DNA of 64,000 nucleotides, from the sequence record NC_041878.1. One strand, written 5' to 3'. Shown in pieces: positions 1,916 to 60,163 of this stretch. The notes below the pieces were generated by a model. The model had not been told where the DNA came from, did no database searches, and worked only from the letters and a program-made list of their open reading frames with translations. Numbering within the stretch: the first letter of the stretch is position 1; every line of letters begins with the position of its first letter. The position numbers and the translations under genes are program-made.

Positions 1916-4900
1916 ATGTACGTAGATGGATATATGGATAGGAAAAAGACTGGTGAAGTTCTTCACGTAGCTGAACGTGTTAATGGTCAGCGTATACTGC
2001 GTGAAATTGAACCAGTATATGAGTACTATGTTGAATCTCCACGTGGTGAATACAAAACAATCAATGGAACATTAGCTGAGAAGTTTGAATTTACCCGTTT
2101 TTCAGAAATGAAAAAACAAATGGATGCATTGCCAAGTACTGCCAAGATCTATGAAGCAGATTGTAATGTAACCTTTAAAACATTAGCAAAACACTATATG
2201 GGGAAGCCATCTCCTGACCTCAATATTGTATTTTTCGATATTGAAACAGACTTTCACCCAAAATTTGGATATGCTCAACCAAGTGACCCTTTCAACCGTG
2301 TAACTGCAATTTCATTGTATCAAAGCTGGACAGGTAAAGACTATGTTCTTACTATGGCTCCTTCTGATATGGAAATTCATGAAGCACAAGACATTATTAA
2401 TCGTCTTAATGCTGAAACCAATGATCCAAACAGCGTAGTTATTCTATATACTGAAGAAACTGAAATGTTTCAGATGTTCTTTGAGCTAATTGAAGACGGT
2501 GATGTACTATCTGGATGGAACAGTGAATTCTTTGATATTCCATACATGGTTAATAGAACCAGAAAAATCTTTAACGAAGCAACGTTAGCTCGTTGGTGTC
2601 TATGGAATAAGAAACCAAATGCTCGTGAAGCAGATATGTTTGGTAAAACCATCGTAACCTATGATTTGGTCGGTCGTGTTCACTTAGACTATCTAGCATT
2701 GTACAAAAAACATGCTGGACAAGTTGAACAATCATATAAACTAGATTATATTGCTGAAAAAGTAACTGGTGAAAACAAAGTATCCTATGATGGTTCATTG
2801 GATAAATTGTATCGTGAAGATTATGAAACATTTCTACGATATTCTAAGCAGGATAGCATCCTACTAAAGAAAATCGATGAAAAAATGGACTTCATTAATC
2901 TACACAACCGACTAGCACATAAAGAATGTGTACTAATCAGTACTACTATGGGTTCTGTAGCACTAATCGACACTGCAATCATCAATCTTGCTCACCAGCG
3001 TGGGGAAGTCGTGTTCAATAAGCGTAAACTTGAAGAAGATGAAGTTGATTTCGAATATCAAGATTACGAAAGTGAATTTGATGATGAAGATGACGAAGAA
3101 ATGCAAGCTGGATCTAAAGCTGCTGGTGCATGGGTACAAGATCCAGTACTAGGATTGATTGATTTCTTAGGATGTGTTGACTTTAACTCACTATATCCTA
3201 CAGTTCTTCGTACATTAGGCATGAGTACTGAATGTATTCTAGGTCAATTACGTCAAACATATACTGATAAGTATTTGGCTGATAAAATTGAAGAACAACG
3301 TGTCAAATGGGCGAGAAATGGTGGTCGTGGTAAATTTGAACCTAAATGGACTGAAGCATGGCATGGTTTGTTCGCTAGTGTTGAATTCACGATGGTTCGT
3401 GAGAAATCACGAGATGTAATTACCGTTGATCTAGAAGATGGTACTACATTTGAGGCAACAGGTGCTGAATTATATGATATTATCTTCGGTGAAGATAGTA
3501 CTATTGTTCTAAGTGCGAACGGAACACTATTTGATAAGACTAAGTACGGTGTTATTCCAGAAATTCTTACAATGTGGTATTCTGAACGTAAAGCACAACA
3601 AAAAATGGTCATCGACTACAAACACTTGGCTACTGATGGTTGGGAAATTCCAGAAGAAGCAGTACAAGCAATCGAAAAAGAGTTACAATCTCTATCTTTC
3701 GGTACTGGAATTTATAAAACCAACTTACATGAAGATGATCCTATCTATCTAATGCGTTTAGCACTAGGTAAAAACGATTATACTGAAATGGCTAAGATTA
3801 TTGCATCTAATGGTATGCGTGTAGAAGATAATCACATCTTCGTTGCAGAAGCAGATAAGAAGTACTGTAAAACTCAATCTGCATTCTGGAAACAGAACCA
3901 ACAGATCCGTAAGATTCTTCTAAACTCACTATATGGTGCGTTGTTGAACAAAGGTTCACGTTTCTTTGATAAACGTCTAGGTCAATCAGTTACATTAACT
4001 GGCCGTAGTATGACTAAACACCTAGCAAGTAAGATTAATGAAGTTTGTACTGAAACTTACGATCATAGTGGTGGCGTAGTAGTATATGGTGATACTGACT
4101 CCGTATATTTCAGTGTTGCACACTACTATAAAGAGAATGACATTCCGTTTGAAATGTCAAAAGATGAAGTTGTTGAACTTTATCAAATGATTGGTGATAC
4201 TGTAGGTGCATCATTCCCTGAATTTATGGATACAACCTTTAACACTGGTATTGAAAAGGGTAAAATCGTTGGTGCGGATCTGGAAATGGTCGGTTCTCGT
4301 GGTCTATTCTTGAAGAAAAAGCGTTACGCTATTCTAAAATATTGGGAAGATGGGTTCCGTTTAGATGTGGATGGTAAACCCGGTAAGATCAAAGCTATGG
4401 GTCTTGAAATTAAACGCTCAGATACTCCAAAATACATCCAAAACTTCCTAGAAGAAACGTTGGTTGCATTACTAATTGGTGAAACTGAAGAAGAATTACG
4501 TGCTCGTGTACGTGCATTCAAGAAAGAGTTTAAAGATAAACCAAGTATTGAGAAAGGTTCACCAAAAACAGTTAAAAACTATACCAATAAGGAAAAAGAA
4601 TACCAAGATACAGGTAAATGTAGTGTAGGTCATGTACTTGCAGCTATACAATGGAACAAACTTCGTGATTTGAATGATGATAAATCAGTTCCAGAAGCTA
4701 CTGACGGTACTAAAGTGATTGTTTGTGACCTAAAACCTAATCCACTAGGTATTAAGAAAATTGGTTATCCAATTGACTGTGCTGATTATCTTCCAGAATG
4801 GTATCTAGAGCTTCCGTTCGATGATGATACAATGGAAAAAGCTGTACTAACCAAGAAATTAGGTAACATTTTCGGTATTCTAGATATGGATATTGGTATC

Positions 4901-4948
4901 GATGAGAAAAGTACCATTGAATTGAACACTGGTTTCTTCGAATGGTAA
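1916..4948 (+). CDS. gp43: DNA polymerase, family B (T4 gp43-like) with 3'-5' exonuclease domain
   Basis: Exo motifs FFDIETD, GWNSEFFD, YKLDYIA; polymerase motifs VDFNSLYP, KILLNSLYG, YGDTDS, KKRY. Confidence 0.97.
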   Translation: MYVDGYMDRKKTGEVLHVAERVNGQRILREIEPVYEYYVESPRGEYKTINGTLAEKFEFTRFSEMKKQMDALPSTAKIYEADCNVTFKTLAKHYMGKPSPDLNIVFFDIETDFHPKFGYAQPSDPFNRVTAISLYQSWTGKDYVLTMAPSDMEIHEAQDIINRLNAETNDPNSVVILYTEETEMFQMFFELIEDGDVLSGWNSEFFDIPYMVNRTRKIFNEATLARWCLWNKKPNAREADMFGKTIVTYDLVGRVHLDYLALYKKHAGQVEQSYKLDYIAEKVTGENKVSYDGSLDKLYREDYETFLRYSKQDSILLKKIDEKMDFINLHNRLAHKECVLISTTMGSVALIDTAIINLAHQRGEVVFNKRKLEEDEVDFEYQDYESEFDDEDDEEMQAGSKAAGAWVQDPVLGLIDFLGCVDFNSLYPTVLRTLGMSTECILGQLRQTYTDKYLADKIEEQRVKWARNGGRGKFEPKWTEAWHGLFASVEFTMVREKSRDVITVDLEDGTTFEATGAELYDIIFGEDSTIVLSANGTLFDKTKYGVIPEILTMWYSERKAQQKMVIDYKHLATDGWEIPEEAVQAIEKELQSLSFGTGIYKTNLHEDDPIYLMRLALGKNDYTEMAKIIASNGMRVEDNHIFVAEADKKYCKTQSAFWKQNQQIRKILLNSLYGALLNKGSRFFDKRLGQSVTLTGRSMTKHLASKINEVCTETYDHSGGVVVYGDTDSVYFSVAHYYKENDIPFEMSKDEVVELYQMIGDTVGASFPEFMDTTFNTGIEKGKIVGADLEMVGSRGLFLKKKRYAILKYWEDGFRLDVDGKPGKIKAMGLEIKRSDTPKYIQNFLEETLVALLIGETEEELRARVRAFKKEFKDKPSIEKGSPKTVKNYTNKEKEYQDTGKCSVGHVLAAIQWNKLRDLNDDKSVPEATDGTKVIVCDLKPNPLGIKKIGYPIDCADYLPEWYLELPFDDDTMEKAVLTKKLGNIFGILDMDIGIDEKSTIELNTGFFEW

Positions 4949-4963
4949 TAACAAGGACAAAAT

Positions 4964-5476
4964 ATGACTGACAATACAAATATTCACCAACGTATAGGTG
5001 AAGCAATTACTTCTGGTGGTGAATTCAACATCATCCGTGCAAATGATGCACACGAAGAACAAATTCTAACGGATGCTGGGTTTGTAAAAGTCGGTTCAAT
5101 GAAAGAAGGAGACAATATTGTCTCCTTATTCAAAGTTGAACTGAAAGAAAAGGAAGTAGTAAAAATTGTTGAAGTTCCGAATAAAAATAATTCGTGGCCT
5201 TTCAATGAACAATCACATCCATTCCGTAAACCTGATCCTGGTATTTGGTATCATAACAACCATTGGTTATATAACGATCCAAATAAACCAATGTACACAT
5301 ACTTAGGCACTAATACTGGTGATGCAGATTGGGTACAAAAAGATTTGAACAAAACTATATCTACCAGTACTGGAACCTTCAATGGAACTCTAAGTACACG
5401 GTTAGATGCTGCGTATGATCCTCTAAGTATTTTACAGGATTATACATTCAATACAGTACTAGATAAAAAGCAGTAA
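4964..5476 (+). CDS. Hypothetical protein
   Basis: 170 aa ORF, AGGA RBS, same strand and codon style as neighbours. Confidence 0.7.
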   Translation: MTDNTNIHQRIGEAITSGGEFNIIRANDAHEEQILTDAGFVKVGSMKEGDNIVSLFKVELKEKEVVKIVEVPNKNNSWPFNEQSHPFRKPDPGIWYHNNHWLYNDPNKPMYTYLGTNTGDADWVQKDLNKTISTSTGTFNGTLSTRLDAAYDPLSILQDYTFNTVLDKKQ

Positions 5477-11175: not shown

Positions 11176-13517
<2,342 letters not shown>

Positions 13518-13519
<2 letters not shown>

Positions 13520-17816: not shown

Positions 17817-18662
17817 ATGACTGAGCTTGACAAATTTTTTAATAATGTTATGATATTGGACACTGAAACGACTGGCGTTGATGACGATTCAGACATTATT
17901 GAGTTTAGTGCTTCATTTCCATTAAGTGCAAATGATTCATTTGAAGATGTATACAATTATACCTCCAGATTTAAACCAACACATGATGTTCCCGCAGACG
18001 CATCAGCAATTCACTTCATTACAACCGATGATTTGGTAAACGAAGGTTCATATACTGATAAAGCTGAAGAATTCTATCCATTGTTTGGTGTTAAACAGTA
18101 CTATGTAGGACACAATGTGCAGTTTGACCGAAGAATGCTAAGAAAGAATAACGAACGTTTCTTTGGTAATGAAGTTCCTGAGTTTGAAAACGATGAAAGT
18201 TGGATTTGTACATTAAAACTAGCTAAAAAATTATTTGCAGAAGATCCAGAGTTCCAAAACTTAACTTTGAGCTATTTGTGGTTCAAATTTGAGTTGAATA
18301 AGACATGTACTCATAAAATTGTGCCTCATAGTGCAGAAGATGATGTGTATATGACTTATAAGGTACTTTCACATCTAGTAAATATTGCAATCGAACGAGG
18401 CTTGATTGACACCAATAAGGAAATTGGTTCACAAGTTGTGACATTAGCAAACACACCAATACTTTATAGCGTTATGACAATTGGTAAACATAAAGGTTGG
18501 GTAATGGAAGATGTTCCTGAAAATTATTTGAAATGGATGATTTCAAATATGGACGTTATGAATCCAGATATGCCTAACTTTGATGCTGACCTTGCCTTTA
18601 CGGTAGAAACTGAAATAACTCGTAGATTGGAAAATGGACTAATGTCATTCGACGTTGAATAA
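17817..18662 (+). CDS. DEDDh 3'-5' exonuclease (DnaQ/ExoX-like)
   Basis: LDTETTG, GHNVQFD, HSAEDD motifs; C-terminal GKHKG..DVP..YLKW module as in ExoX-like proteins. Confidence 0.88.
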   Translation: MTELDKFFNNVMILDTETTGVDDDSDIIEFSASFPLSANDSFEDVYNYTSRFKPTHDVPADASAIHFITTDDLVNEGSYTDKAEEFYPLFGVKQYYVGHNVQFDRRMLRKNNERFFGNEVPEFENDESWICTLKLAKKLFAEDPEFQNLTLSYLWFKFELNKTCTHKIVPHSAEDDVYMTYKVLSHLVNIAIERGLIDTNKEIGSQVVTLANTPILYSVMTIGKHKGWVMEDVPENYLKWMISNMDVMNPDMPNFDADLAFTVETEITRRLENGLMSFDVE

Positions 18663-21173: not shown

Positions 21174-22018
21174 TGTTTGATTTTAACGGTTTACCAACAG
21201 CTTCAGAGGATGAAGAAACTAGTACAAGTACAGCAACCAAGTTAGATATGAATCTATTACTTGAAAAAATTGATATGGCTGACTATGACTATTACGACAC
21301 TCTAAGTGATAAAGAAAAGAAACATTTCCAACCGTATATTGTATTACGTTGGATTAGTTCTCTTGACGATTCAGTACAAGTAACATATACTGCAAAGAAA
21401 GTTGAAAACATCTTTGGTAAATGGTCAAGCGGTGGTAAAGATGCTCTTAATGAACTCAAAGATGAGTTTAATAGTACTGGTGCAGGGGTCTGCATCAGTG
21501 CCGCGAAGTACGAACATGCAAAGTACGATTGGCGTATTAAGTTTGCCGTACAAGACAGAGCAAGTGCAGATGCACTAATTGAAACCATGAAAGAATTTGG
21601 TATAACTGGACATGAAATCATTTCTCTCATTGATAGTACTACAATTAAGTACCATCTGATTATGCTAAATGATATGGTTAACCAGAACTTTTGGGAAATG
21701 AAAAACCATCCAGAGCTTGTGTATGAACTTATGTGTTCAGTATCAGAAATGATTGGACCACAGAAACGTGCACACAACTGGTTACCACATTGCAAAGGTT
21801 TGAAAAACGTCGATAAGAATATTTTCGACATTATAAAACGCACTCAATCTGAATATACTGCTGCTAATATGAATGAAGCAGAGTATAAGATTTTACTATC
21901 TGGTTATACGAAAGAAACCTTTGAAGATCTTCTTAAAGACTTAGGTTCATCTGAAACAGAAATTAAAACTCTTTTGAAACAATTCAAAGCAGAAAGTGAA
22001 AAGTATGGCAAAAACTAA
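21173..22018 (+). CDS. Probable clamp-loader small subunit (gp62-like) with insertion
   Basis: N-terminal ..YDTLSDKEKKHFQPYIVLRWISS and C-terminal LNDMVNQNFW..HPELVYELMC..KRAHNW resemble gp62-family proteins as recalled. Confidence 0.45.
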   Translation: MFDFNGLPTASEDEETSTSTATKLDMNLLLEKIDMADYDYYDTLSDKEKKHFQPYIVLRWISSLDDSVQVTYTAKKVENIFGKWSSGGKDALNELKDEFNSTGAGVCISAAKYEHAKYDWRIKFAVQDRASADALIETMKEFGITGHEIISLIDSTTIKYHLIMLNDMVNQNFWEMKNHPELVYELMCSVSEMIGPQKRAHNWLPHCKGLKNVDKNIFDIIKRTQSEYTAANMNEAEYKILLSGYTKETFEDLLKDLGSSETEIKTLLKQFKAESEKYGKN

Positions 22019-22724
22019 TAAAGGGGCTGCAAAAGCCCCTACTTATAAATGCAGATTTTGTGATAAAGAATATAAACGAGAAGATACAGTACTTACTCAT
22101 GCTTGTGTGAAACGTGATCGTTACAATGATCGTGAATCCCGACAAATGCGTGAGGCTTTTCGATTGTACATGCATTTCATGGAAGTTCACAAATTTCAAA
22201 TGAAAAAGAATGAAGAACCATTGATGCAGTTTATCAAGTCTAGATATTTTAATGACTTCTATGATTTTGCACAGTACATTTTATCACATGATATTCTAAA
22301 TAAAGAACAATTCATCACGTATGTTTTAACGAGTGGAAAGACTGTTTATGAATGGAAATCTCAAAAAACGTATGAGGAATGGGTAATTAAGTGCATTCGT
22401 AATGAACACCCTAGACGTGGTATTGAACGCTCAATTAATGCATTAGTTGAGTGGAGCGTAGCCACAGATAATGAATGGACAAGTTTCTTTGAAAATGTAA
22501 GTACTGAACGTGCTATTATGTGGTTCGAGACAGGTAAGATTTCTCCCTGGCTGATCTATGCGGCATCACCAGAAAGTGGAAACAAACTACTGAACCGTTT
22601 TTCTGACTCAGAGTTAGAATATCTGGTTCGTTTTATCGATCCAACATATTTCAAAATTCTCCAGATTCGTTATAATGATGAAGTGTTAGATATACGAAAT
22701 TTATTAACGGAGGCTGGTCTATGA
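22005..22724 (+). CDS. C2HC zinc-finger hypothetical protein
   Basis: YKCRFCDKEYKREDTVLTHAC; start moved to ATG 22005. Confidence 0.65.
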   Translation: MAKTNKGAAKAPTYKCRFCDKEYKREDTVLTHACVKRDRYNDRESRQMREAFRLYMHFMEVHKFQMKKNEEPLMQFIKSRYFNDFYDFAQYILSHDILNKEQFITYVLTSGKTVYEWKSQKTYEEWVIKCIRNEHPRRGIERSINALVEWSVATDNEWTSFFENVSTERAIMWFETGKISPWLIYAASPESGNKLLNRFSDSELEYLVRFIDPTYFKILQIRYNDEVLDIRNLLTEAGL

Positions 22725-23068
22725 TACATGGAATGTATTCAAACAATAATGATGACCAATTTGAACAAAAATCTGATGTACTGAAGAATGCAGCAGAATC
22801 AAAACTATCAATGATTCAACGTGGTTCAGTTACAGAGATTACGATGGGTGACAGAACTTTTCAAGTCACAGATCCTAAGCGTATGGAACAAACTATCTCA
22901 GTACTGAAGCATCAAGAAGAAGCTATTCAGAACTTGAGAGCAAGAATGAAAGAACATCATAATGCAATTAGTGTTTTGGTTCAAGAAATACAGACTTTAA
23001 AGAATGAAGTTCAAAGATTGAAGGAAATAACTAATGGATATGGATCACAAGAATTCTCAAACTATTAA
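22721..23068 (+). CDS. Coiled-coil hypothetical protein
   Basis: Heptad-like LKHQEEAIQNLRARMKEHHNAISVLVQEIQTLKNEVQRL; ATGA overlap. Confidence 0.65.
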   Translation: MIHGMYSNNNDDQFEQKSDVLKNAAESKLSMIQRGSVTEITMGDRTFQVTDPKRMEQTISVLKHQEEAIQNLRARMKEHHNAISVLVQEIQTLKNEVQRLKEITNGYGSQEFSNY

Positions 23069-23684
23069 TTATAGAAAAGCCAGAACTGATATTGATATTG
23101 ACTTTAAAGATGGAAAGTCAGTTATTGAGCAACTACCTTGTACCAGAAGTGTAGAAAGGATTACAGAGGATGGTTTGGTTCCTCATAATAGTGGTGTTCA
23201 TTTTGATAACATACCCGTAGACCCTATTAGCGGTTTAGCGAGCATTCAATACAAAGAAGCCGAAAGATTAGGATATCAAAAAGTTGATATTCTGTCTCAA
23301 TCGGCTTACGAACATGTGCGTGATAGGGATCACTTAAAAGAATTAATGAACAAAGAGCCTGATTGGGATCTATTATTAGTGCCTGAGTTCGTGGAAGAAT
23401 TATCACAAATTAAAAAGCATATAACCTTACTTAATGTGTGGCGTCCTCGTAGTATAGATGAACTGGCAATGTTTATTGCTATGATCCGTCCTGGGAAGCG
23501 TCAATGTCAGAGTATGAATAGTTGGGATGAGGTGAGGGCTGTTATTTGGGATTATGATAGTATTGGGCTAGACGCAGAGGGAAGAAAGTTAAGATACTTT
23601 AAAAAACCCCATGCTTATGCATATAGTTTAATGATTGTTGTTCAGTTGAACGCATTGGTAGAATATATTATTTCCTCTTCTTGA
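23034..23684 (+). CDS. DnaE (Pol III alpha)-like catalytic fragment, C-terminal half of a split minimal polymerase
   Basis: TDIDIDF (DnaE PDxDxDF), PHNSGVHF (HxxGVVI), LGYQKVDILS (GLxKxDxLG), AMIRPG (ALYRPG), FKKPHAYAYS (FNKSHAAAY). Confidence 0.8.
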   Translation: MDMDHKNSQTINYRKARTDIDIDFKDGKSVIEQLPCTRSVERITEDGLVPHNSGVHFDNIPVDPISGLASIQYKEAERLGYQKVDILSQSAYEHVRDRDHLKELMNKEPDWDLLLVPEFVEELSQIKKHITLLNVWRPRSIDELAMFIAMIRPGKRQCQSMNSWDEVRAVIWDYDSIGLDAEGRKLRYFKKPHAYAYSLMIVVQLNALVEYIISSS

Positions 23685-24021
23685 GAGCAACATTCCTGCG
23701 TTTAATACGTTTGGTCGGTAGATCACTTAACGAAATTACTGGCCCAGAGTGAACTTTCACTTGGTCAGTATTGAAGCGTTTTGTAAAAGGTTCAAATTTT
23801 TCCATTTCTTCTTGCATGAATAAGCAAATAGGAATGGTACGATTACTTTGCCACCACCAGTTATTAGCTAGTAGCAACAGTTCTTCTTGTAGGGATTCAT
23901 CCATCTCATGAAAACAGTACAATGTCATGTATTGTTTACTTTTGATTTTGATAATCCCATAATAGATAATCTCGTCGTGTTCTATGACTGTCACGAAAGG
24001 ATAAGTTTTGTATTCATTCAT
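23668..24021 (-). CDS. Hypothetical protein
   Basis: 117 aa; AGGA-type RBS and TATAAATA upstream on the minus strand; converges on the DnaE fragment. Confidence 0.65.
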   Translation of the reverse strand: MNEYKTYPFVTVIEHDEIIYYGIIKIKSKQYMTLYCFHEMDESLQEELLLLANNWWWQSNRTIPICLFMQEEMEKFEPFTKRFNTDQVKVHSGPVISLSDLPTKRIKRRNVALKKRK

Positions 24022-24029
24022 AGGACTTC

Positions 24030-24037
24030 CATAAATA
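24030..24037 (+). promoter_or_regulatory. Putative late promoter CATAAATA
   Basis: About 40 nt upstream of 24079. Confidence 0.5.
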
Positions 24038-24060
24038 TTGTATAAAATGATTATATATAT

Positions 24061-24068
24061 TATTTATA
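24061..24068 (-). promoter_or_regulatory. Putative late promoter TATAAATA
   Basis: Exact T4 late consensus on the minus strand, upstream of 23668..24021. Confidence 0.55.
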
Positions 24069-24078
24069 GAGGTTAAAC

Positions 24079-25050
24079 ATGGCACATCACGGCGTATACA
24101 TGTATCCTTATAACAATGAAGTTTCTCTAGGCAATTTCAACATGCCATTTAACCAAGAGAAATTGACAATTTATAGAGGTGCAAACAATCCTATCAGCTT
24201 TACTATTCACAATGCTGATGGAAAATATACATTGATTAGCGATAATCAATATCTTGTGTTCAGTATCTTCGATGCACGAAACGACACAAGAATCTTTGAA
24301 ACCGTACTTGACAAGTTTCTACCATCTTGGGTATCGGAAGCTGGACAAGCACGACCAACAATTAGTAATAAACAGAAAGTCTACTACGGTTGTATTGTAC
24401 CTGCTGGTGTAATACAAGATTTAAGTGTAGGTTCTAAGTACCGTTGGAGTATTACTAAAGTCACATTAGACGGTGATTTAATTGAACCAACAGAGTACTT
24501 ATATACTGGTTTAAACTTTGAAGCAAGTGCTGAATTGATTATTAGTAACTTAGCTGCTCCTACATTTACCCCAAGTCAAGAAATTAGTGCGAATAAAAAT
24601 CCATCATGGCTACCAATTAAAGATAAGGAACAGAAACCTATCTCTAATGGATTCTTTGGTGATTATGATGTTATGCACAGTTCAGCAATACGTGCTGATG
24701 CACAATACGGCCTAGTTGATGGTTTAAGTACTATCGCATTTTACTTTAAGAATTTCATTGGACGTGTTCAATTACAAGGTTGCCTTGCAAATGAAACTCC
24801 AAAAGATGCAGAAGATTATAAGTGGTTCATTATTAAGTTAGACGGTAAAGACTACATTGAAAACAATTTCGATCCAAATGGAATTCCAATTCCAATAGAC
24901 GAAATTAGACCTTTCAATTTCCACGGTCAACTGATGTGGGTTAGGGTAGTATGTTGCATTCCACCAATTGTCACAACTTATCCACCAAATGTGATCAAGA
25001 AAGATTACAATCCGTTGAACACTATACCGAAGATTCTCATCCGTAGATAA
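24079..25050 (+). CDS. Probable virion structural protein
   Basis: 323 aa beta-rich; late motif upstream; GAGG RBS. Confidence 0.5.
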   Translation: MAHHGVYMYPYNNEVSLGNFNMPFNQEKLTIYRGANNPISFTIHNADGKYTLISDNQYLVFSIFDARNDTRIFETVLDKFLPSWVSEAGQARPTISNKQKVYYGCIVPAGVIQDLSVGSKYRWSITKVTLDGDLIEPTEYLYTGLNFEASAELIISNLAAPTFTPSQEISANKNPSWLPIKDKEQKPISNGFFGDYDVMHSSAIRADAQYGLVDGLSTIAFYFKNFIGRVQLQGCLANETPKDAEDYKWFIIKLDGKDYIENNFDPNGIPIPIDEIRPFNFHGQLMWVRVVCCIPPIVTTYPPNVIKKDYNPLNTIPKILIRR

Positions 25051-25112: not shown

Positions 25113-26159
25113 ATGATGAATCAGATACAAAATATTATGGCAAATATTATGCATGACCCTGTTCCAATTATGGATCGCTGGAACCAACATAATTGCCCTG
25201 CTTGTATTACAAGAGGGCAGTCTAGACCTGATACAAAAGGTCGTGGAAACCATATGTTTAGAAACGATGGTTCAGTGGTTTATAATTGTTTCAACTGTCA
25301 TTTAAAAGCAGTTTGGTCACCAGGACGATATGTAAGCAGAGACATGGAATCTTTGCTACGTTCCTTTGGTGCATCTGATAAAGAAATGATCTCTATTAAA
25401 CTCATTGCTAAAGAAATGGCAGAGAGTGGTGATTATGAAGTAGAAGAAACTACCAATTCAAAACTGTATCAAAAAATTGTACGACGCGAGTTACCTAGCG
25501 ATGCTAAACCATTCTTGGAATGGGTGAACATGGATAACATACCACCAGATTTCATAAAGGTTATAAACGCAGTAAATGACCGTAATCCGTACTTGCTGGA
25601 CTTAGATTTATATTGGAGTCCATCAAAAGAATTTTATATGTACCAACGGTTCATCATTCCGTATTACATGAATGGACAAATCATAGGTTACACTGCTCGT
25701 CATATTGATCCTAAAAGCGAATATCGTTATAGGAATCAAGTTAGTACGAGCATTTTTTATAACTTTGATTTGCTAAATGATGATAGGATACAAACTATCC
25801 TTGTTGCAGAAGGTCCAATAGATGCAAGTCTAATGGGTGGTGTTTCTGCGAATAACTACTTTCTCAGCAATTCGCAATTAGATTTATTGCACAAAGCAGA
25901 AGAACGTGGTAAAAATATAGTTATTGTTCCAGATCGTGACAAAGACGGATTAGTTACGATAGAACAAGCTATTGAGCACGGTTTCAGTGTAGCATTACCT
26001 GATTACGGTGCAGTGCGTGATGAAAATGGAATTCGTCACATTAAGGATTTTGATGAAGCATGTGCCAAGTACGGAAGATTGTTTTGTTTACAACTTCTAC
26101 ATAAAAGCATATACACAGATAGATTCGATATTAGAGTACAAACTGAAAAATGGATTTGA
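25113..26159 (+). CDS. DNA primase (gp61/DnaG-like)
   Basis: Zn finger CPAC...CFNC; TOPRIM motifs AEGPIDA and PDRDKDG; adjacent to helicase. Confidence 0.88.
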   Translation: MMNQIQNIMANIMHDPVPIMDRWNQHNCPACITRGQSRPDTKGRGNHMFRNDGSVVYNCFNCHLKAVWSPGRYVSRDMESLLRSFGASDKEMISIKLIAKEMAESGDYEVEETTNSKLYQKIVRRELPSDAKPFLEWVNMDNIPPDFIKVINAVNDRNPYLLDLDLYWSPSKEFYMYQRFIIPYYMNGQIIGYTARHIDPKSEYRYRNQVSTSIFYNFDLLNDDRIQTILVAEGPIDASLMGGVSANNYFLSNSQLDLLHKAEERGKNIVIVPDRDKDGLVTIEQAIEHGFSVALPDYGAVRDENGIRHIKDFDEACAKYGRLFCLQLLHKSIYTDRFDIRVQTEKWI

Positions 26160-26166
26160 GGTTTAA

Positions 26167-27663
26167 ATGGCAAGCAACACGGACGTAAGAAAATATGACA
26201 TTAGTTATCAACTATATTTGCTATCGCAAATTTTTAGTACACCAGACCTATATGTACGGTGTAAGAACGTACTAAAGCCAGATTATTTCGATAAGGAATA
26301 TCACGCTAGTATCCAATATGTTCATGACTATTCAAGCAAGTACAACGTAACTCCAACGCTAAACGACATTAAACACAATGCAGATTTTCAGTACAGCGAA
26401 ACACCAGTACAAGAATTAAATCAGCAAGCAGTACTAGATAGTATTGGTGAGTTTTGTCGGCATAAAGCATTAGCACATGCAATTCAACAAGGCATGGAAC
26501 TAGTGAACCAAAAACGTTACGGTGGAATCGAAGAACTAATTCGCGAAGCAATGCTTGTAACTGTTCAGAACGATTTGGGTCTAGACATTTATGAAAATCC
26601 AGAAGAAGTTATTAGTTCACTAGCAGATATGCAAGGTACTTTTAAATCTGGATGGGAAACACTTGATTATAAACTATTCGGTGGTTTCGGTCGTCAAGAA
26701 CTCGAAATCTTTGCAGCAGCATCCGGTGGTGGTAAATCAGTAGTACTACAAAACTTAGCAGTAAACTTTAGTAAAGCAGGGCTAAACGGTGCATACATTA
26801 CACTAGAACTAGCATCTGAACTTGTTGCCGTTCGTATCTATGGTATGATGGTTAACACCGCTCAGAGCAAAGTTAAAGTTAATATTGATGAAACCGCAGC
26901 AAAAGTAAAAATCGAAGAACGTAGCAATGGTAAACTTCGTGTTCACCGTCTACCAGAATCCGTCAGTACTGTAAATGATATTGAAAGTTATATCCGTGAA
27001 CTACAAATCAAAACAGGAATTAAATTAGATTATGTTTGTGTTGACTACCTTGATCTGTTAACATCTGACCGTTGTGGTCCAAACGATAAATCAAATGCGT
27101 TCGTTAAAGATAAGTTTGTGTCTGAAGAATTACGTGCACTAGCAATGAAAATGGACTTGACTGTATTCACAGCATGTCAGTTCAACCGTAGTGGTGTTTC
27201 TGGTGAAGACGTTAAAAGTCAAGCACAAATTGCGGGTGGTATTTCTAAAATCTATACCGCAGATAACGTTATCTATATTGATGCACGTAAAGAACGAGGC
27301 GAAATGGTATTTGACTTCCAGAAAACTCGTAACAGTTCCGCAGTAGGTTCACGTCTAATTATGTCTTATGATATTGACTCTCTACGTGTTCTTGATCACC
27401 CACAAACGGTACAAGAAATGGAAATCAATACATCATTTAAACATAGTGGTAAAACTTTATTGGGTCGAGGAAATGTAATGGCAACACCTACATTACCTGG
27501 CAACACAGCAATGAGTTCTTTACAGAATAAACTTGCAAATGCAGTAAGACCTAGTACACAAATTACACAAAAAGATGACAGTACTGAAACGCCAGATATA
27601 AATACACCAAAGACTGAGGATAAAGTTTCTCATATGCGAAACTTTTTGAATGGTAGGATGTAA
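26167..27663 (+). CDS. Replicative DnaB-family helicase (gp41-like)
   Basis: Walker A AASGGGKS, ITLEL, VDYLDL, SEELRALA, TACQFNR, KTRN. Confidence 0.93.
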   Translation: MASNTDVRKYDISYQLYLLSQIFSTPDLYVRCKNVLKPDYFDKEYHASIQYVHDYSSKYNVTPTLNDIKHNADFQYSETPVQELNQQAVLDSIGEFCRHKALAHAIQQGMELVNQKRYGGIEELIREAMLVTVQNDLGLDIYENPEEVISSLADMQGTFKSGWETLDYKLFGGFGRQELEIFAAASGGGKSVVLQNLAVNFSKAGLNGAYITLELASELVAVRIYGMMVNTAQSKVKVNIDETAAKVKIEERSNGKLRVHRLPESVSTVNDIESYIRELQIKTGIKLDYVCVDYLDLLTSDRCGPNDKSNAFVKDKFVSEELRALAMKMDLTVFTACQFNRSGVSGEDVKSQAQIAGGISKIYTADNVIYIDARKERGEMVFDFQKTRNSSAVGSRLIMSYDIDSLRVLDHPQTVQEMEINTSFKHSGKTLLGRGNVMATPTLPGNTAMSSLQNKLANAVRPSTQITQKDDSTETPDINTPKTEDKVSHMRNFLNGRM

Positions 27664-56708: not shown

Positions 56709-57014
56709 ATGTTCCATCCGTTTTTTGATCCTTCATCTTTAAGTAATCAAGAACTTCATGACAAAATCAATGAAGTTTCTATGCGTATTGCTTCTGCTAG
56801 AGCAGCAGGAATCCAATATGAAGTTATACAATCTATGTTTACTGTAATTCAATCTTGTGAAGAAGAATTACGTACTCGCCAAGCTAAAGTAGATTTGGAT
56901 GAAGTACAGAAAGAAAACAATCATTGTGTATTTGATTCAGATAGTTATATTAACACTTCAGATGAAAAGAAAAATGAAAGTACAAGGAAACAGAACTATA
57001 AGCGAGCATGGTGA
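56709..57014 (+). CDS. Hypothetical coiled-coil protein
   Basis: 101 aa, GGAGGA RBS. Confidence 0.65.
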   Translation: MFHPFFDPSSLSNQELHDKINEVSMRIASARAAGIQYEVIQSMFTVIQSCEEELRTRQAKVDLDEVQKENNHCVFDSDSYINTSDEKKNESTRKQNYKRAW

Positions 57015-57492
57015 TGTTCGCTTAGATTTAAACGCCGTGGTTTACGCAATAAACTGCGGTGCAGACATAAGATACATACAACTTAATGAACAAGATGAAG
57101 CTGAACGACTAAAGTTCAACGACAATTGTAAGAAATTCGGATTAGAAGAACGTATGTTGGATTATACAATCAATCATGACCAGAATCATGAGTTATGGCG
57201 TTATGATCCAGCATATGATAAAATTAATCTCGAAGACTATTTTCTTAACTTATGCAGTACAGATGAGCAACGCGAACGTGTACTATATGAGCTAAGTCTA
57301 TATGAAAGCTACAACATGACTAAACTACTACGTTGTATGATCTGGCTAGTAGACTACCTCGAAGAACATAATATTTTTTGGGGCTTAGGTCGTGGAAGTT
57401 CAGTAAGCAGCTATTGTTTATATTTGATTGGATTACATCTAGTAGATTCCATAAAATATGAACTAGATGTGAACGAATTTTTGAAATGGTAA
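56974..57492 (+). CDS. DnaE (Pol III alpha)-like fragment, N-terminal half of a split minimal polymerase
   Basis: ERVLYEL...DYLEEHNIFWGLGRGSSVSSYCLYLIGLHLVDSIKYELDVNEFLK matches DnaE RL..EL...GxGRGSxxGSLVAY.LGIT.VDP..Y.L.FERFL; start moved to ATG 56974. Confidence 0.8.
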   Translation: MKVQGNRTISEHGDVRLDLNAVVYAINCGADIRYIQLNEQDEAERLKFNDNCKKFGLEERMLDYTINHDQNHELWRYDPAYDKINLEDYFLNLCSTDEQRERVLYELSLYESYNMTKLLRCMIWLVDYLEEHNIFWGLGRGSSVSSYCLYLIGLHLVDSIKYELDVNEFLKW

Positions 57493-57538: not shown

Positions 57539-57913
57539 ATGAAGAAACACACTAGCTATCGCGGTCAGAAGATCGATATGGAGATGTTGAAGTTTCAGCA
57601 TCAACACAGCGTAGCAATTGGTAATGCCAATATGAATGCTCGCGGTGATATTATTGGTCGTGGCGGCACAGTTATCAAAAAGCGTGAAGACTTACTTGCT
57701 GAACGTGAACGTGAACTGCAAAAACCTGATATTAGTCCAGAACATCAGAGTCATTCTATGGCTCCACAGATGGGCGACCCAATGGATTTTGCGGATACTG
57801 GTTTTGATGATTCTCAGTTTGAAAGTACTCCAACCGGAGATACCATTGAGCCTGAGAAGAAAGCACCAGTTAAACGTGCTAAAGTAGCAAAAGACGACGC
57901 TGAACAAGAATAA
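57539..57913 (+). CDS. Hypothetical protein
   Basis: 124 aa; AIGNANMNARGDIIGRGG low-complexity core. Confidence 0.7.
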   Translation: MKKHTSYRGQKIDMEMLKFQHQHSVAIGNANMNARGDIIGRGGTVIKKREDLLAERERELQKPDISPEHQSHSMAPQMGDPMDFADTGFDDSQFESTPTGDTIEPEKKAPVKRAKVAKDDAEQE

Positions 57914-58578: not shown

Positions 58579-59534
58579 GCATGACCTCTCTATGGACTGA
58601 AAAATACCGCCCTGGTAATATCGAAGAATATGTGTTTAAAAACCCAGCTTTTAAACTAAAAATGGAAGAATGGATCAGAACTGGTCAGATTCCTCACATC
58701 GGTTTCTTCGGTCCAGCCGGAACAGGTAAAACTTCAGCGATTAAAGTCTTGATTAATGGCTTAGTCGAAAATGGATTTGTAGACCCATCTGATGTAACAA
58801 TTCTAAACATGTCCGATGAAGGTATGGATGCAGTACGTGAAAAGATCGATGCAGCAGCACGTCTTTCTGCATTCGGTGATTACCGTATCTTTGTACTGGA
58901 AGAAATGGAACAAATGGGGATCAAAGCACAGGGTTCTCTAAAACGTATTATGGAAGATTATCACGAGAATGCTCGTTTTATTCTAACGTCCAATGAACCA
59001 CACAAAATCCTAAAACCAATCATCTCTCGTGTTCAATCTATCATGATTGAAAAACACGATCAAGATGATTTCACCACCCGTATCATTGAAATCCTAATCA
59101 ATGAAGGTGTAGAACTAGATACTGAAGAAAGCTTAGATCTAGTTAACAAGTACATTAAATGTACTTTCCCTGATTTCCGCAAAACATTGAACACACTTCA
59201 GAGTTCAGTAGTTGATGGTAAACTAGTTAAACTAGAAGATTCGATTGATAGTACTGCAAGTTATCGTGCTGCAATTATCGATGCACTACAAGCAGGTAAT
59301 ATTCGTCAGATGCGTGAGCAAATTGTACAAAACATTCCAGAAGATGAAATCGATGGTTTCTTCTCATTCTTGTATCGTAATGTAGAAATGTTCACTACTG
59401 ATGAAATTAAAGAAATGAAGATCAAGGTTAAGATTCGTGATGCAGTTGTTAAACAAGCATCTGTTTCAGACCGTGAGATGAATCTATCCGCACTACTATG
59501 TGAAGTAGATTTGATCTGCAACGACCAAATGTAA
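58575..59534 (+). CDS. gp44: Clamp-loader AAA+ subunit (gp44/RFC-like)
   Basis: WTEKYRP, GPAGTGKT, LEEME, SRV, PDFRK..NTLQ. Confidence 0.93.
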   Translation: MSMTSLWTEKYRPGNIEEYVFKNPAFKLKMEEWIRTGQIPHIGFFGPAGTGKTSAIKVLINGLVENGFVDPSDVTILNMSDEGMDAVREKIDAAARLSAFGDYRIFVLEEMEQMGIKAQGSLKRIMEDYHENARFILTSNEPHKILKPIISRVQSIMIEKHDQDDFTTRIIEILINEGVELDTEESLDLVNKYIKCTFPDFRKTLNTLQSSVVDGKLVKLEDSIDSTASYRAAIIDALQAGNIRQMREQIVQNIPEDEIDGFFSFLYRNVEMFTTDEIKEMKIKVKIRDAVVKQASVSDREMNLSALLCEVDLICNDQM

Positions 59535-59542
59535 GGTAAACA

Positions 59543-60163
59543 ATGTCAAGTAAACAAAAAGCCGTAATCTTGGATTGCGATGAAATTCTATTAAACCACT
59601 TAGGTGGTTTTAAAAAATACGTACAGAAATACTACGATATTCAAACCGTTGGGGAACCACAGCAGTATAATTTACAAGATTGGCTATGCTGTGATGCTGA
59701 ACAAGTTATGGATTTGTTAAAGAATTTTAACTTCTATTCATATGAATTTGGTTTATTGGAACCAATGGATGAATTTGTAGTTGACCGTATGAAGCAACTA
59801 CGCTCTCGTTATCCTGATGTGGCCTTTATTGTGGTAACTAAAAGTGGTACATTCGGTCATGGTGAAGTACTTCGTAAGGTAAATCTAATTAATGTCTTTG
59901 GTGACATTTTTGATGATATTATCATTCTTGAGAACTATCAAACCAAACGTGGTACTTATCTTAAACTACAGAATCAGTACGATGTAGTTACTGTTGTTGA
60001 TGATCATCTTGTTAATATTGATGTTGCTAAACAAGTAGGTCTTGATACTGTAGTACTAGAATGTTCACACAACGTATCTGAAAAGAACAATCCTAACTAC
60101 AATTTTGTAGAAGATTGGCGTGATATGTTTACGTATATTGATGACAAAATCAAAGGGGAGTAA
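59543..60163 (+). CDS. HAD-superfamily phosphatase (5'-deoxyribonucleotidase-like)
   Basis: ILDCDEIL motif I, VVTKS motif II, VVDDHLVN motif IV. Confidence 0.75.
   Translation: MSSKQKAVILDCDEILLNHLGGFKKYVQKYYDIQTVGEPQQYNLQDWLCCDAEQVMDLLKNFNFYSYEFGLLEPMDEFVVDRMKQLRSRYPDVAFIVVTKSGTFGHGEVLRKVNLINVFGDIFDDIIILENYQTKRGTYLKLQNQYDVVTVVDDHLVNIDVAKQVGLDTVVLECSHNVSEKNNPNYNFVEDWRDMFTYIDDKIKGE

Follow-up and report, generated by a model that had tools for sequence, protein, structure and literature searches.

Iyer, Anantharaman, Krishnan, Burroughs and Aravind (2021, Viruses 13:63, PMC7824862) described a split minimal form of the DNA polymerase III alpha subunit (Pol III alpha) in group 2.2 jumbo phages. 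The entity consists of an N-terminal protein that binds nucleoside triphosphates (NTPs) and a C-terminal protein that binds Mg2+ and template, encoded by distant genes (PMC7824862). The phages that have it also encode a family B polymerase and an RFC-like loader, and the paper cites Pectobacterium phage vB_PcaM_CBB (PMC7824862). Its authors proposed that the split enzyme works together with the family B enzyme, either to synthesize one strand or in repair, and that it may be a model of the ancestral enzyme (PMC7824862). We analyzed a stretch of 64,000 nucleotides of vB_PcaM_CBB (CBB), positions 186001-250000 of KU574722.1 / NC_041878.1, and compared the products of two of its genes, gp328 and gp287, with C-family DNA polymerases. 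We refer to the whole stretch as the window and use its numbering for all CBB coordinates. Window positions 22000-25000 are 100% identical to positions 208000-211000 of this record. CBB is a 378-kb RaK2-like jumbo myovirus whose hosts are plant-rot bacteria.

Judging from sequence comparisons and predicted structures, gp328 and gp287 probably make up a single minimal DNA polymerase of the C family (Pol III alpha type), as one subunit each. They are the same entity as the split Pol III alpha of Iyer et al.: they have all the described traits, and nothing essential is different. The computational description is already known, and our finding is a correct and independent rediscovery of it. A first-pass annotation of the window, made from the letters of the sequence, had treated the pair as essentially undescribed. 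This was mistaken, as Iyer et al. 2021 (PMC7824862) describe exactly this split enzyme. The same annotation knew of no functional characterization. Our search of the full-text literature likewise found no functional study of the split Pol III alpha, and genome papers published since then go no further than listing a "DNA polymerase III" gene.

The two halves, gp328 and gp287

The N-terminal half, gp328 (56974-57492, + strand; 172 amino acids), contains the first part of the palm, including the nucleotide-binding loop. The Pfam family for the Pol III alpha palm, PF07733, matches gp328 with 34.1 bits (cut-off 23.9) over profile positions 20-95 of 260, and gp328 belongs to phrog_11127 (E 3e-87). 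Residues 101-170 of gp328 align with residues 385-454 of Taq Pol III alpha, and residues 97-170 align with residues 333-406 of M. tuberculosis DnaE1. The sequence GLGRGSSVSS (57382-57411, + strand), a GS-type triphosphate-binding motif of the Pol-beta-like palm, aligns with the GRGS loop of the Taq, E. coli and M. tuberculosis alpha subunits. The AlphaFold (AF2) model of gp328 has a predicted local distance difference test score (pLDDT) of 87.0, and the six best Foldseek matches in the PDB are C-family polymerases. The record labels gp328 "DNA polymerase III alpha".

The C-terminal half, gp287 (YP_009594827.1; 23034-23684, + strand; an open reading frame (ORF) of 216 amino acids), contains the metal-binding palm strands and a reduced finger region. 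It matches phrog_11778 (E 2e-108). [quoted passage not shown] H760 is its presumptive steric gate against ribonucleotides and is described as invariant in Pol III alpha (PMC8485763). Equivalents of all four are found in gp287. The strand TDIDIDF (23085-23105, + strand) carries D19 and D21, equivalent to E. coli D401 and D403, followed by D23; these assignments come from the alignment of a fusion protein with E. coli alpha (2hnh) and of the family profile with M. tuberculosis DnaE1 (5lew). The strand GYQKVDIL (23271-23294, + strand) carries K83 and D85. D85 is at the position of D555, the third catalytic carboxylate, by collinearity; the alignment actually returned was with M. tuberculosis DnaE1 (profile positions 60-144 with residues 568-665). 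The finger motif RPGK (R152, P153, G154 and K155; 23487-23498, + strand) aligns with M. tuberculosis 661-665 and E. coli 638-641. The finger helix FKKPHAYAY (23598-23624, + strand) carries H193, the equivalent of H760 (profile positions 163-180 with residues 750-767 of the E. coli chain in 2hnh). The sequence HNSGV is at residues 51-55. All of the motifs that the first-pass annotation had quoted (TDIDIDF, QKVDIL, HxxGV, RPG and FxKxHAxAY) are present in the translation.

We searched PDB sequences with a profile of the C-half family built from 30 sequences. The best matches were M. tuberculosis DnaE1 and E. coli alpha, with E-values of 0.016-0.3. The match to M. tuberculosis DnaE1 is in collinear pieces: 413-424 (the Asp strand), 568-665 (from the third Asp to RPG) and 765-787 (the FxKxHAxAY helix). 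With gp287 alone no Pfam cut-off was reached (the finger-domain family PF17657 scored 11.3 bits; 22 are needed), and a single-sequence phmmer search of the PDB returned chance matches only. The AlphaFold (AF2) model of gp287 is confident (pLDDT 92.5). Its nine best Foldseek matches in the PDB are Pol III alpha structures (E 3e-3 to 0.4), with a probability of ~1.0 for the first six. In BFVD the best matches are phage DnaE-type polymerases, along with a close relative of 69 residues (75% identity) at rank 2.

gp287 is named "DNA polymerase" in RefSeq and "putative membrane protein" in GenBank. We reject the membrane-protein label, because residues 191-215, which make up its hydrophobic C-terminal helix, are the finger helix that comes after the steric-gate His. 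The first-pass annotation had expected relatives to be auto-annotated as Pol III alpha. This is true of some, but naming is inconsistent, and "DNA polymerase", "membrane protein" and "hypothetical" are also used.

The break between the two polypeptides falls inside the palm. Relative to DnaE, gp287 begins within ~5 residues of the end of gp328. The alignments place the break in a linker of ~8-11 residues of the Pol-beta-like palm, between the GRGS helix-loop (gp328) and the beta-strand with the first two aspartates (gp287). We considered a split intein at this point and rejected it, as there is no room for one: gp328 ends at FLKW, two residues past the last residue aligned with DnaE. Ahead of the Asp strand there are 17 residues in gp287 and 1-5 in homologues.

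Some natural proteins contain both halves in one chain. An exhaustive phmmer search of 1.84 billion representatives with gp287 found 267 relatives, and lengths are known for the 150 that were listed. Among these 150, 107 are 170-235 amino acids long, 40 are shorter (mostly fragments) and 3 are longer than 300. One protein, P0328 (375 amino acids), is a natural fusion in the order N-half then C-half. Its residues 10-180 match gp328 (35% identity, E 1e-26) and its residues 190-372 match gp287. [quoted passage not shown] The stretch runs from the GRGS loop through the Asp strand and therefore crosses the point at which the CBB proteins are split. The first-pass annotation had claimed that the 216-aa ORF at 23034-23684 starts where the ORF at 56974-57492 stops relative to DnaE, and both the alignments and P0328 bear this out. 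A second fusion, P0330 (336 amino acids), has the same N-then-C order. In contrast, P0389 (398 amino acids) is circularly permuted: the C-half (6-194) comes first and is followed by the core of the N-half (236-317; hhalign probability 95%, E 2.6e-8). P0328 (locus L007, 1066-2193) and P0389 (locus L008, 871-2067) are both real called genes on metagenomic contigs. A DnaB/RecA-like AAA_25 gene comes after the permuted gene.

The two halves also occur together. Counts of C-half and N-half matches from tblastn, sorted by genus of the phage host, are near-identical: 34 and 34 for Escherichia, 11 and 11 for Pseudomonas, 8 and 8 for Erwinia, and 8 and 8 for Salmonella. Homologues are found in phages RaK2, 121Q, GAP32, PA5oct and Atu_ph07. 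We regard the two halves as one enzyme because the split is within the palm, the halves co-occur, and natural fusions exist in both orders.

We found that the predicted active-site residues are highly conserved. Conservation was counted over 229 relatives of the C-half and 112 relatives of the N-half, many of them only 30-45% identical. The three aspartates, whose conservation the first-pass annotation had proposed as a check, are retained in 225 (D19), 224 (D21) and 228 (D85) of the 229 C-half relatives. K83 is present in all 229, and D23 is present in 220, with Glu in four more. In the finger region, R152 is found in 224, P153 in 226, K155 of RPGK in 213, K190 in 215, the steric-gate equivalent H193 in 223 and Y197 in 210. 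In the N-half family, residues G137, G139, R140, G141, S142 and S143 of gp328 are invariant (112/112). This pattern indicates a working active site that would be selective for deoxynucleoside triphosphates (dNTPs), and not a relic or a scaffold. Because H193 corresponds to the steric gate H760, the predicted substrates are dNTPs and not NTPs.

Little beyond the catalytic core is present. There was no Pfam match to PHP, thumb, clamp-binding motif, HhH or OB in gp287 or gp328, which total 388 amino acids. The alignment with M. tuberculosis DnaE1 skips residues 425-567 and 666-764, everything before ~330 and everything after ~790. The small total size and these large gaps agree with the first-pass annotation, which had listed the same regions as missing. 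Its description of a two-gene C-family core of ~390 residues likewise holds, on the basis of homology, predicted fold and catalytic residues. Since the accessory domains are absent, we place the pair in the superfamily as a catalytic-core member and not as a canonical alpha subunit. For the same reason, the enzyme would be expected to be distributive, to lack a proofreading domain of its own and to depend on partners.

Gene neighborhoods and distribution

The genes for the two halves are 33,289 bp apart in the window, and separation is the rule. The N-half was found within 10 kb of C-half genes in none of 80 diverse IMG/VR loci (0/80; 973 kb of flanking sequence), and the C-half was within 10 kb of N-half genes in 1 of 80 loci (1.32 Mb of flanking sequence). 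The only close pair in the 160 loci is on an IMG/VR contig of 516,805 bp (L124, 9998-14326), where 3.2 kb separates the genes; both are on one strand, and the N-half precedes the C-half. A C2H2-like gene lies between the two halves on this contig.

Each half has its own conserved replication module. In CBB, the C-half is followed by genes for a primase (gp290) and a DnaB-like helicase (gp291) (25113-27663, + strand; from annotation). Downstream of the C-half, primase was found in 41/43 and DnaB in 41/43 eligible loci, and a UvsW-like helicase gene is upstream of the C-half in 57 loci. The N-half is near the gene for the clamp-loader AAA+ subunit gp332 (58581-59534, + strand; phrog_168, E 3e-75). 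Of 65 eligible loci, 58 have a clamp loader downstream of the N-half, and a GroES-like gene is near this half in 74/80. A non-replicase role, as proposed by the first-pass annotation, is not supported: both halves are in conserved replication modules.

The immediate neighbors are conserved as well. Directly upstream of the C-half is gp285 (22005-22724, + strand), a C2H2-like zinc-finger protein of 239 amino acids with weak C2H2 Pfam matches only. A gp285-like gene is at this position in 77 of 78 eligible viral loci, and gp285 is 28% identical to its counterpart in the PA5oct-like phage PAC2 (E 2e-38). Possibly it binds DNA as an accessory protein of either the mini-polymerase or the primase-helicase. 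On the opposite strand, the convergent ORF gp288 (23668-24021, - strand; 117 amino acids, with a basic C-terminal tail) shares 17 nucleotides with the 3' end of the C-half gene. A gp288-like ORF is directly downstream of the C-half on the opposite strand in 72/73 eligible loci. gp288 is 36% identical to the PAC2 neighbor (E 1e-26) and had no match to known families. Downstream of the N-half is gp329 (57539-57913, + strand; 124 amino acids), with a conserved N-terminal segment and an acidic tail. In CBB it precedes the GroES-like gene and the clamp loader. A gp329-like gene is next to the N-half in 79 of 80 loci, and gp329 is similar to the PAC2 neighbor (E 3e-12). By their tight linkage, gp285, gp288 and gp329 are candidate partners of the halves.

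The gene for gp287 starts inside gp286 (35-nucleotide overlap, 23034-23068), and that for gp328 starts inside gp327 (41-nucleotide overlap, 56974-57014). These overlaps suggest translational coupling to the upstream gene in both cases. Scans for sigma-70 promoters and terminators around both genes gave results no better than shuffled sequences. The T4-late-like motif TATAAATA reported for CBB was not enriched, and there was none upstream of either half on the + strand. The main text of the PA5oct omics paper gives no gene-level timing for homologues of the halves.

The same gene order with homologous neighbors is found in PAC2 and in Atu_ph07. Therefore, the split is older than the divergence of these lineages. 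Both halves, with 11 kb between them, are also present in Alishewanella phage Slickus01, whose 141.6-kb genome encodes a B-family polymerase as well. The family is thus not confined to genomes of >200 kb. A B-family polymerase is present alongside the split Pol III in both genomes inspected, CBB and Slickus01. The B-family polymerase of Slickus01 is annotated as two adjacent coding sequences, 2558-4261 and 4261-5196 (L179, 2558-5196), and this phage may carry two split polymerases.

We also scanned cellular genomes, using one genome per species for 185,579 bacterial and archaeal species. Nine loci (L169-L177) were found, all on contigs of metagenome-assembled genomes (MAGs) with a phage module, and none were in isolate bacterial genomes. 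The GTDB labels of these MAGs include Pacearchaeota, Cloacimonadota, Natrialbaceae and Rickettsiales. All nine loci have the C2H2-like gene, the C-half and the convergent ORF; most also have primase and five have DnaB. They look like contigs of large phages, one of them 335 kb long, that were binned into MAGs. We rejected a cellular origin because there were only nine loci in 185,579 species genomes, all on contigs with the phage module. The split Pol III family is phage-restricted.

The window encodes other replication proteins. The B-family DNA polymerase gp263 (1916-4948, + strand; Pfam DNA_pol_B and DNA_pol_B_exo1; phrog_262) has its own exonuclease domain and is presumed to be the main replicase of CBB. 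The first-pass annotation had credited the phage with a B-family replicase complete with clamp and loader. The polymerase and the loader are present, but no sliding clamp was identified among the window genes by Pfam and PHROG annotation. Directly after the clamp loader is gp333 (59543-60163, + strand; 206 amino acids; phrog_420, of unknown function), which has no Pfam match. Judged by its position, it could be a small clamp-loader subunit. Genes for SSB, RecA, a UvsW-like helicase and topoisomerase II are also in the window.

A standalone DnaQ/RNase T-type exonuclease, gp280 (17817-18662, + strand; Pfam PF00929, E 7e-22), has a C-terminal extension of ~100 residues. We considered gp280 as a partner of the split enzyme in a Pol III "core". 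This is not supported as a rule, as relatives are also found in P2-like phages without the mini-Pol III. Full-length homologues of gp280 are found in RaK2-like and PA5oct-like phages, and none are listed for Atu_ph07, XacN1, Ralstonia or Stenotrophomonas phages. Elsewhere in the window, gp274 (11176-11883, + strand) and gp275 (11870-13519, + strand) overlap and are both annotated as terminase large subunit. Pfam Terminase_6N matches gp275 only (E 7e-16), and gp274 has no Pfam match.

Predicted activity and alternative explanations

We suggest that neither protein alone would form an active site and that gp328 and gp287 would assemble non-covalently into one palm. In this assembly, gp328 would clamp the triphosphate of the incoming nucleotide with its GRGS loop, and gp287 would provide the three metal-binding carboxylates D19, D21 and D85. 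The reduced finger helices of gp287 (RPGK and FKKPHAYAY) would supply the steric-gate His, H193, and the substrates would be dNTPs. Judging from the conserved residues, we think it likely that the pair is an active heterodimeric dNTP polymerase.

From its gene context, the enzyme would be an accessory DNA polymerase of the phage replisome, acting beside the B-family replicase gp263. Most plausibly, it would carry out short-patch synthesis, such as extending primers that the neighboring primase-helicase makes, or fill gaps in the course of recombination-dependent replication and repair. A role specifically in primer extension or lagging-strand synthesis is a tentative assignment, and a role specifically in repair or gap filling is tentative as well. 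It is rather doubtful that the enzyme is a true second replisomal polymerase that extends primers of the primase-helicase before a hand-off to the B-family replicase.

Several observations weigh against an active polymerase made of the two halves. Against solved Pol III alpha structures, the C-half gives weak sequence E-values (0.016 for the profile; the pieces are singly not significant), and the case rests on the collinear motifs and the fold search. The Foldseek TM-scores of gp287 (TMq) are moderate, 0.36-0.47. The thumb and most of the DNA-contacting finger, HhH and OB elements that hold the primer-template are absent. Rare members of the family lack one aspartate, for example P0084, which has Val at position 21. 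The conserved neighborhoods may be mere synteny of one monophyletic phage group and may reflect shared ancestry, not function. Finally, our literature search found no published work on activity, interaction or expression of any member.

Our results might also indicate that the two proteins are an active nucleotidyltransferase that is not a templated polymerase, and that they function in tailing, priming, DNA modification or synthesis of a signaling or counter-defense nucleotide. The class of Pol-beta-like palms includes many non-polymerase transferases (PMC7824862). The absence of the thumb, HhH, OB and most of the primer-template-holding finger elements would fit such an activity, and CBB is already equipped with a complete B-family polymerase that includes an exonuclease domain. 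However, the steric-gate His, RPG and FxKxHAxAY, which are C-family-specific, are kept in 94-99% of relatives, and the two genes are in replication modules and not in defense or anti-defense islands. Neither Pfam nor Foldseek matched other nucleotidyltransferase families: for CD-NTase/cGAS-like, MNT, CCA-adding and poly(A) polymerases there was no Pfam match at E up to 1, and none was above noise in Foldseek searches of the PDB and BFVD. We consider a non-templated transferase unlikely. The suggestions of the first-pass annotation that belong here (template-independent tailing, DNA modification and counter-defense nucleotide synthesis) are disfavored by the retention of H193 in 223/229 relatives, the kept finger motifs and the fold matches, which are to Pol III alpha only. 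Alternatively, the fold could be kept only as a frame, and the proteins could have a structural or regulatory function in the replisome without catalysis, such as that of a scaffold from the primase-helicase to the clamp loader. The tight linkage of each half to a different replisome module, the missing DNA-binding modules and the absence of activity studies from the literature would all suit a scaffold. It seems quite unlikely to us, since the residues needed only for chemistry (the three Asp, K83, the GRGS loop and the steric-gate His) are the most conserved in both families and would be expected to drift in a scaffold.

It is also conceivable that the halves act separately with other partners: the C-half might pair with gp285 or gp288, and the N-half with gp329. 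A distance of 33 kb lies between the genes, adjacency is all but absent (0/80 and 1/80 loci), and each gene has its own near-universal neighbor. A split inside the catalytic palm, the presence of both halves in the same genomes and the natural fusions in both orders make separate action very improbable. Lastly, the genes might be remnants, in the process of decay, of a host dnaE that was once captured. This corresponds to the reading in the CBB genome paper, which calls CBB_328 a truncated Pol III alpha (172 vs 1120 amino acids) and in which gp287 is unrecognised (PMC5259590). Decay is scarcely credible given that both ORFs are intact and of constant size (medians 172 amino acids for the N-half and 193 for the C-half), that hundreds of divergent relatives have invariant active-site residues and fixed syntenic positions, and that the family is restricted to phage contigs. 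All four of these explanations become less likely in light of the conservation and context data.

Comparison with known polymerases

If the pair formed by gp328 and gp287 is active, it would be the smallest known templated C-family DNA polymerase, with ~390 residues and an active site shared by two polypeptides. An active enzyme would be useful for finding out how small the catalytic unit of the bacterial replicase family can be, and with it one could test the idea, put forward by Iyer et al., that forms of this kind are similar to the ancestral enzyme. It would also help explain the retention of a second polymerase beside a complete B-family replisome in a large clade of big phages. If it extends primers, it would be a natural and very small model of a two-polymerase replisome. 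The practical gain is in annotation: proteins of the gp287 type ("putative membrane protein" or "hypothetical" in many records) and of the gp328 type ("truncated Pol III alpha") should be labeled jointly, as two subunits of one enzyme. To the description by Iyer et al. we add the residue counts, the retention of the steric-gate His, the fused and permuted forms, the neighborhood statistics, the occurrence in a non-jumbo phage of 141.6 kb and the absence from isolate bacterial genomes.

The best fold matches of the phage proteins are bacterial Pol III alpha (E. coli 2hnh, Taq 2hpi and M. tuberculosis DnaE1 5lew) and PolC, with which they have in common the palm, the GRGS loop, the three Asp, RPG and the steric-gate His helix. 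In contrast to these enzymes, the phage enzyme has ~390 and not ~1160 amino acids, consists of two chains and is not the main replicase of its genome. It is without the PHP, thumb, clamp-binding motif, HhH, OB and tau-binding regions.

Full-length phage polymerases of the DnaE/PolC type, found in group 3.2 jumbo phages such as Bacillus phage G and in many siphoviruses, have the same fold and are the best BFVD matches (E from 1.7e-4). They have a PHP domain, are derived from hosts and act as the phage replicase (PMC7824862). Unlike the split enzyme, they are single chains of 540-1470 amino acids, those of intermediate size having 540-830. Cyanobacterial DnaE, which is split by an intein, is similar to the phage enzyme in that a C-family polymerase comes from two distant genes. 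However, the phage proteins have no intein halves, the split is at another site, and the product stays as two chains.

In the two-polymerase replisome of Bacillus subtilis, DnaE extends RNA primers and hands off to PolC. CBB resembles this system in having a C-family enzyme beside a different main replicase, and the position of the C-half gene by the primase-helicase would suit primer extension. Unlike in B. subtilis, the main replicase of the phage is of the B family, and the phage enzyme is without every known clamp or tau contact.

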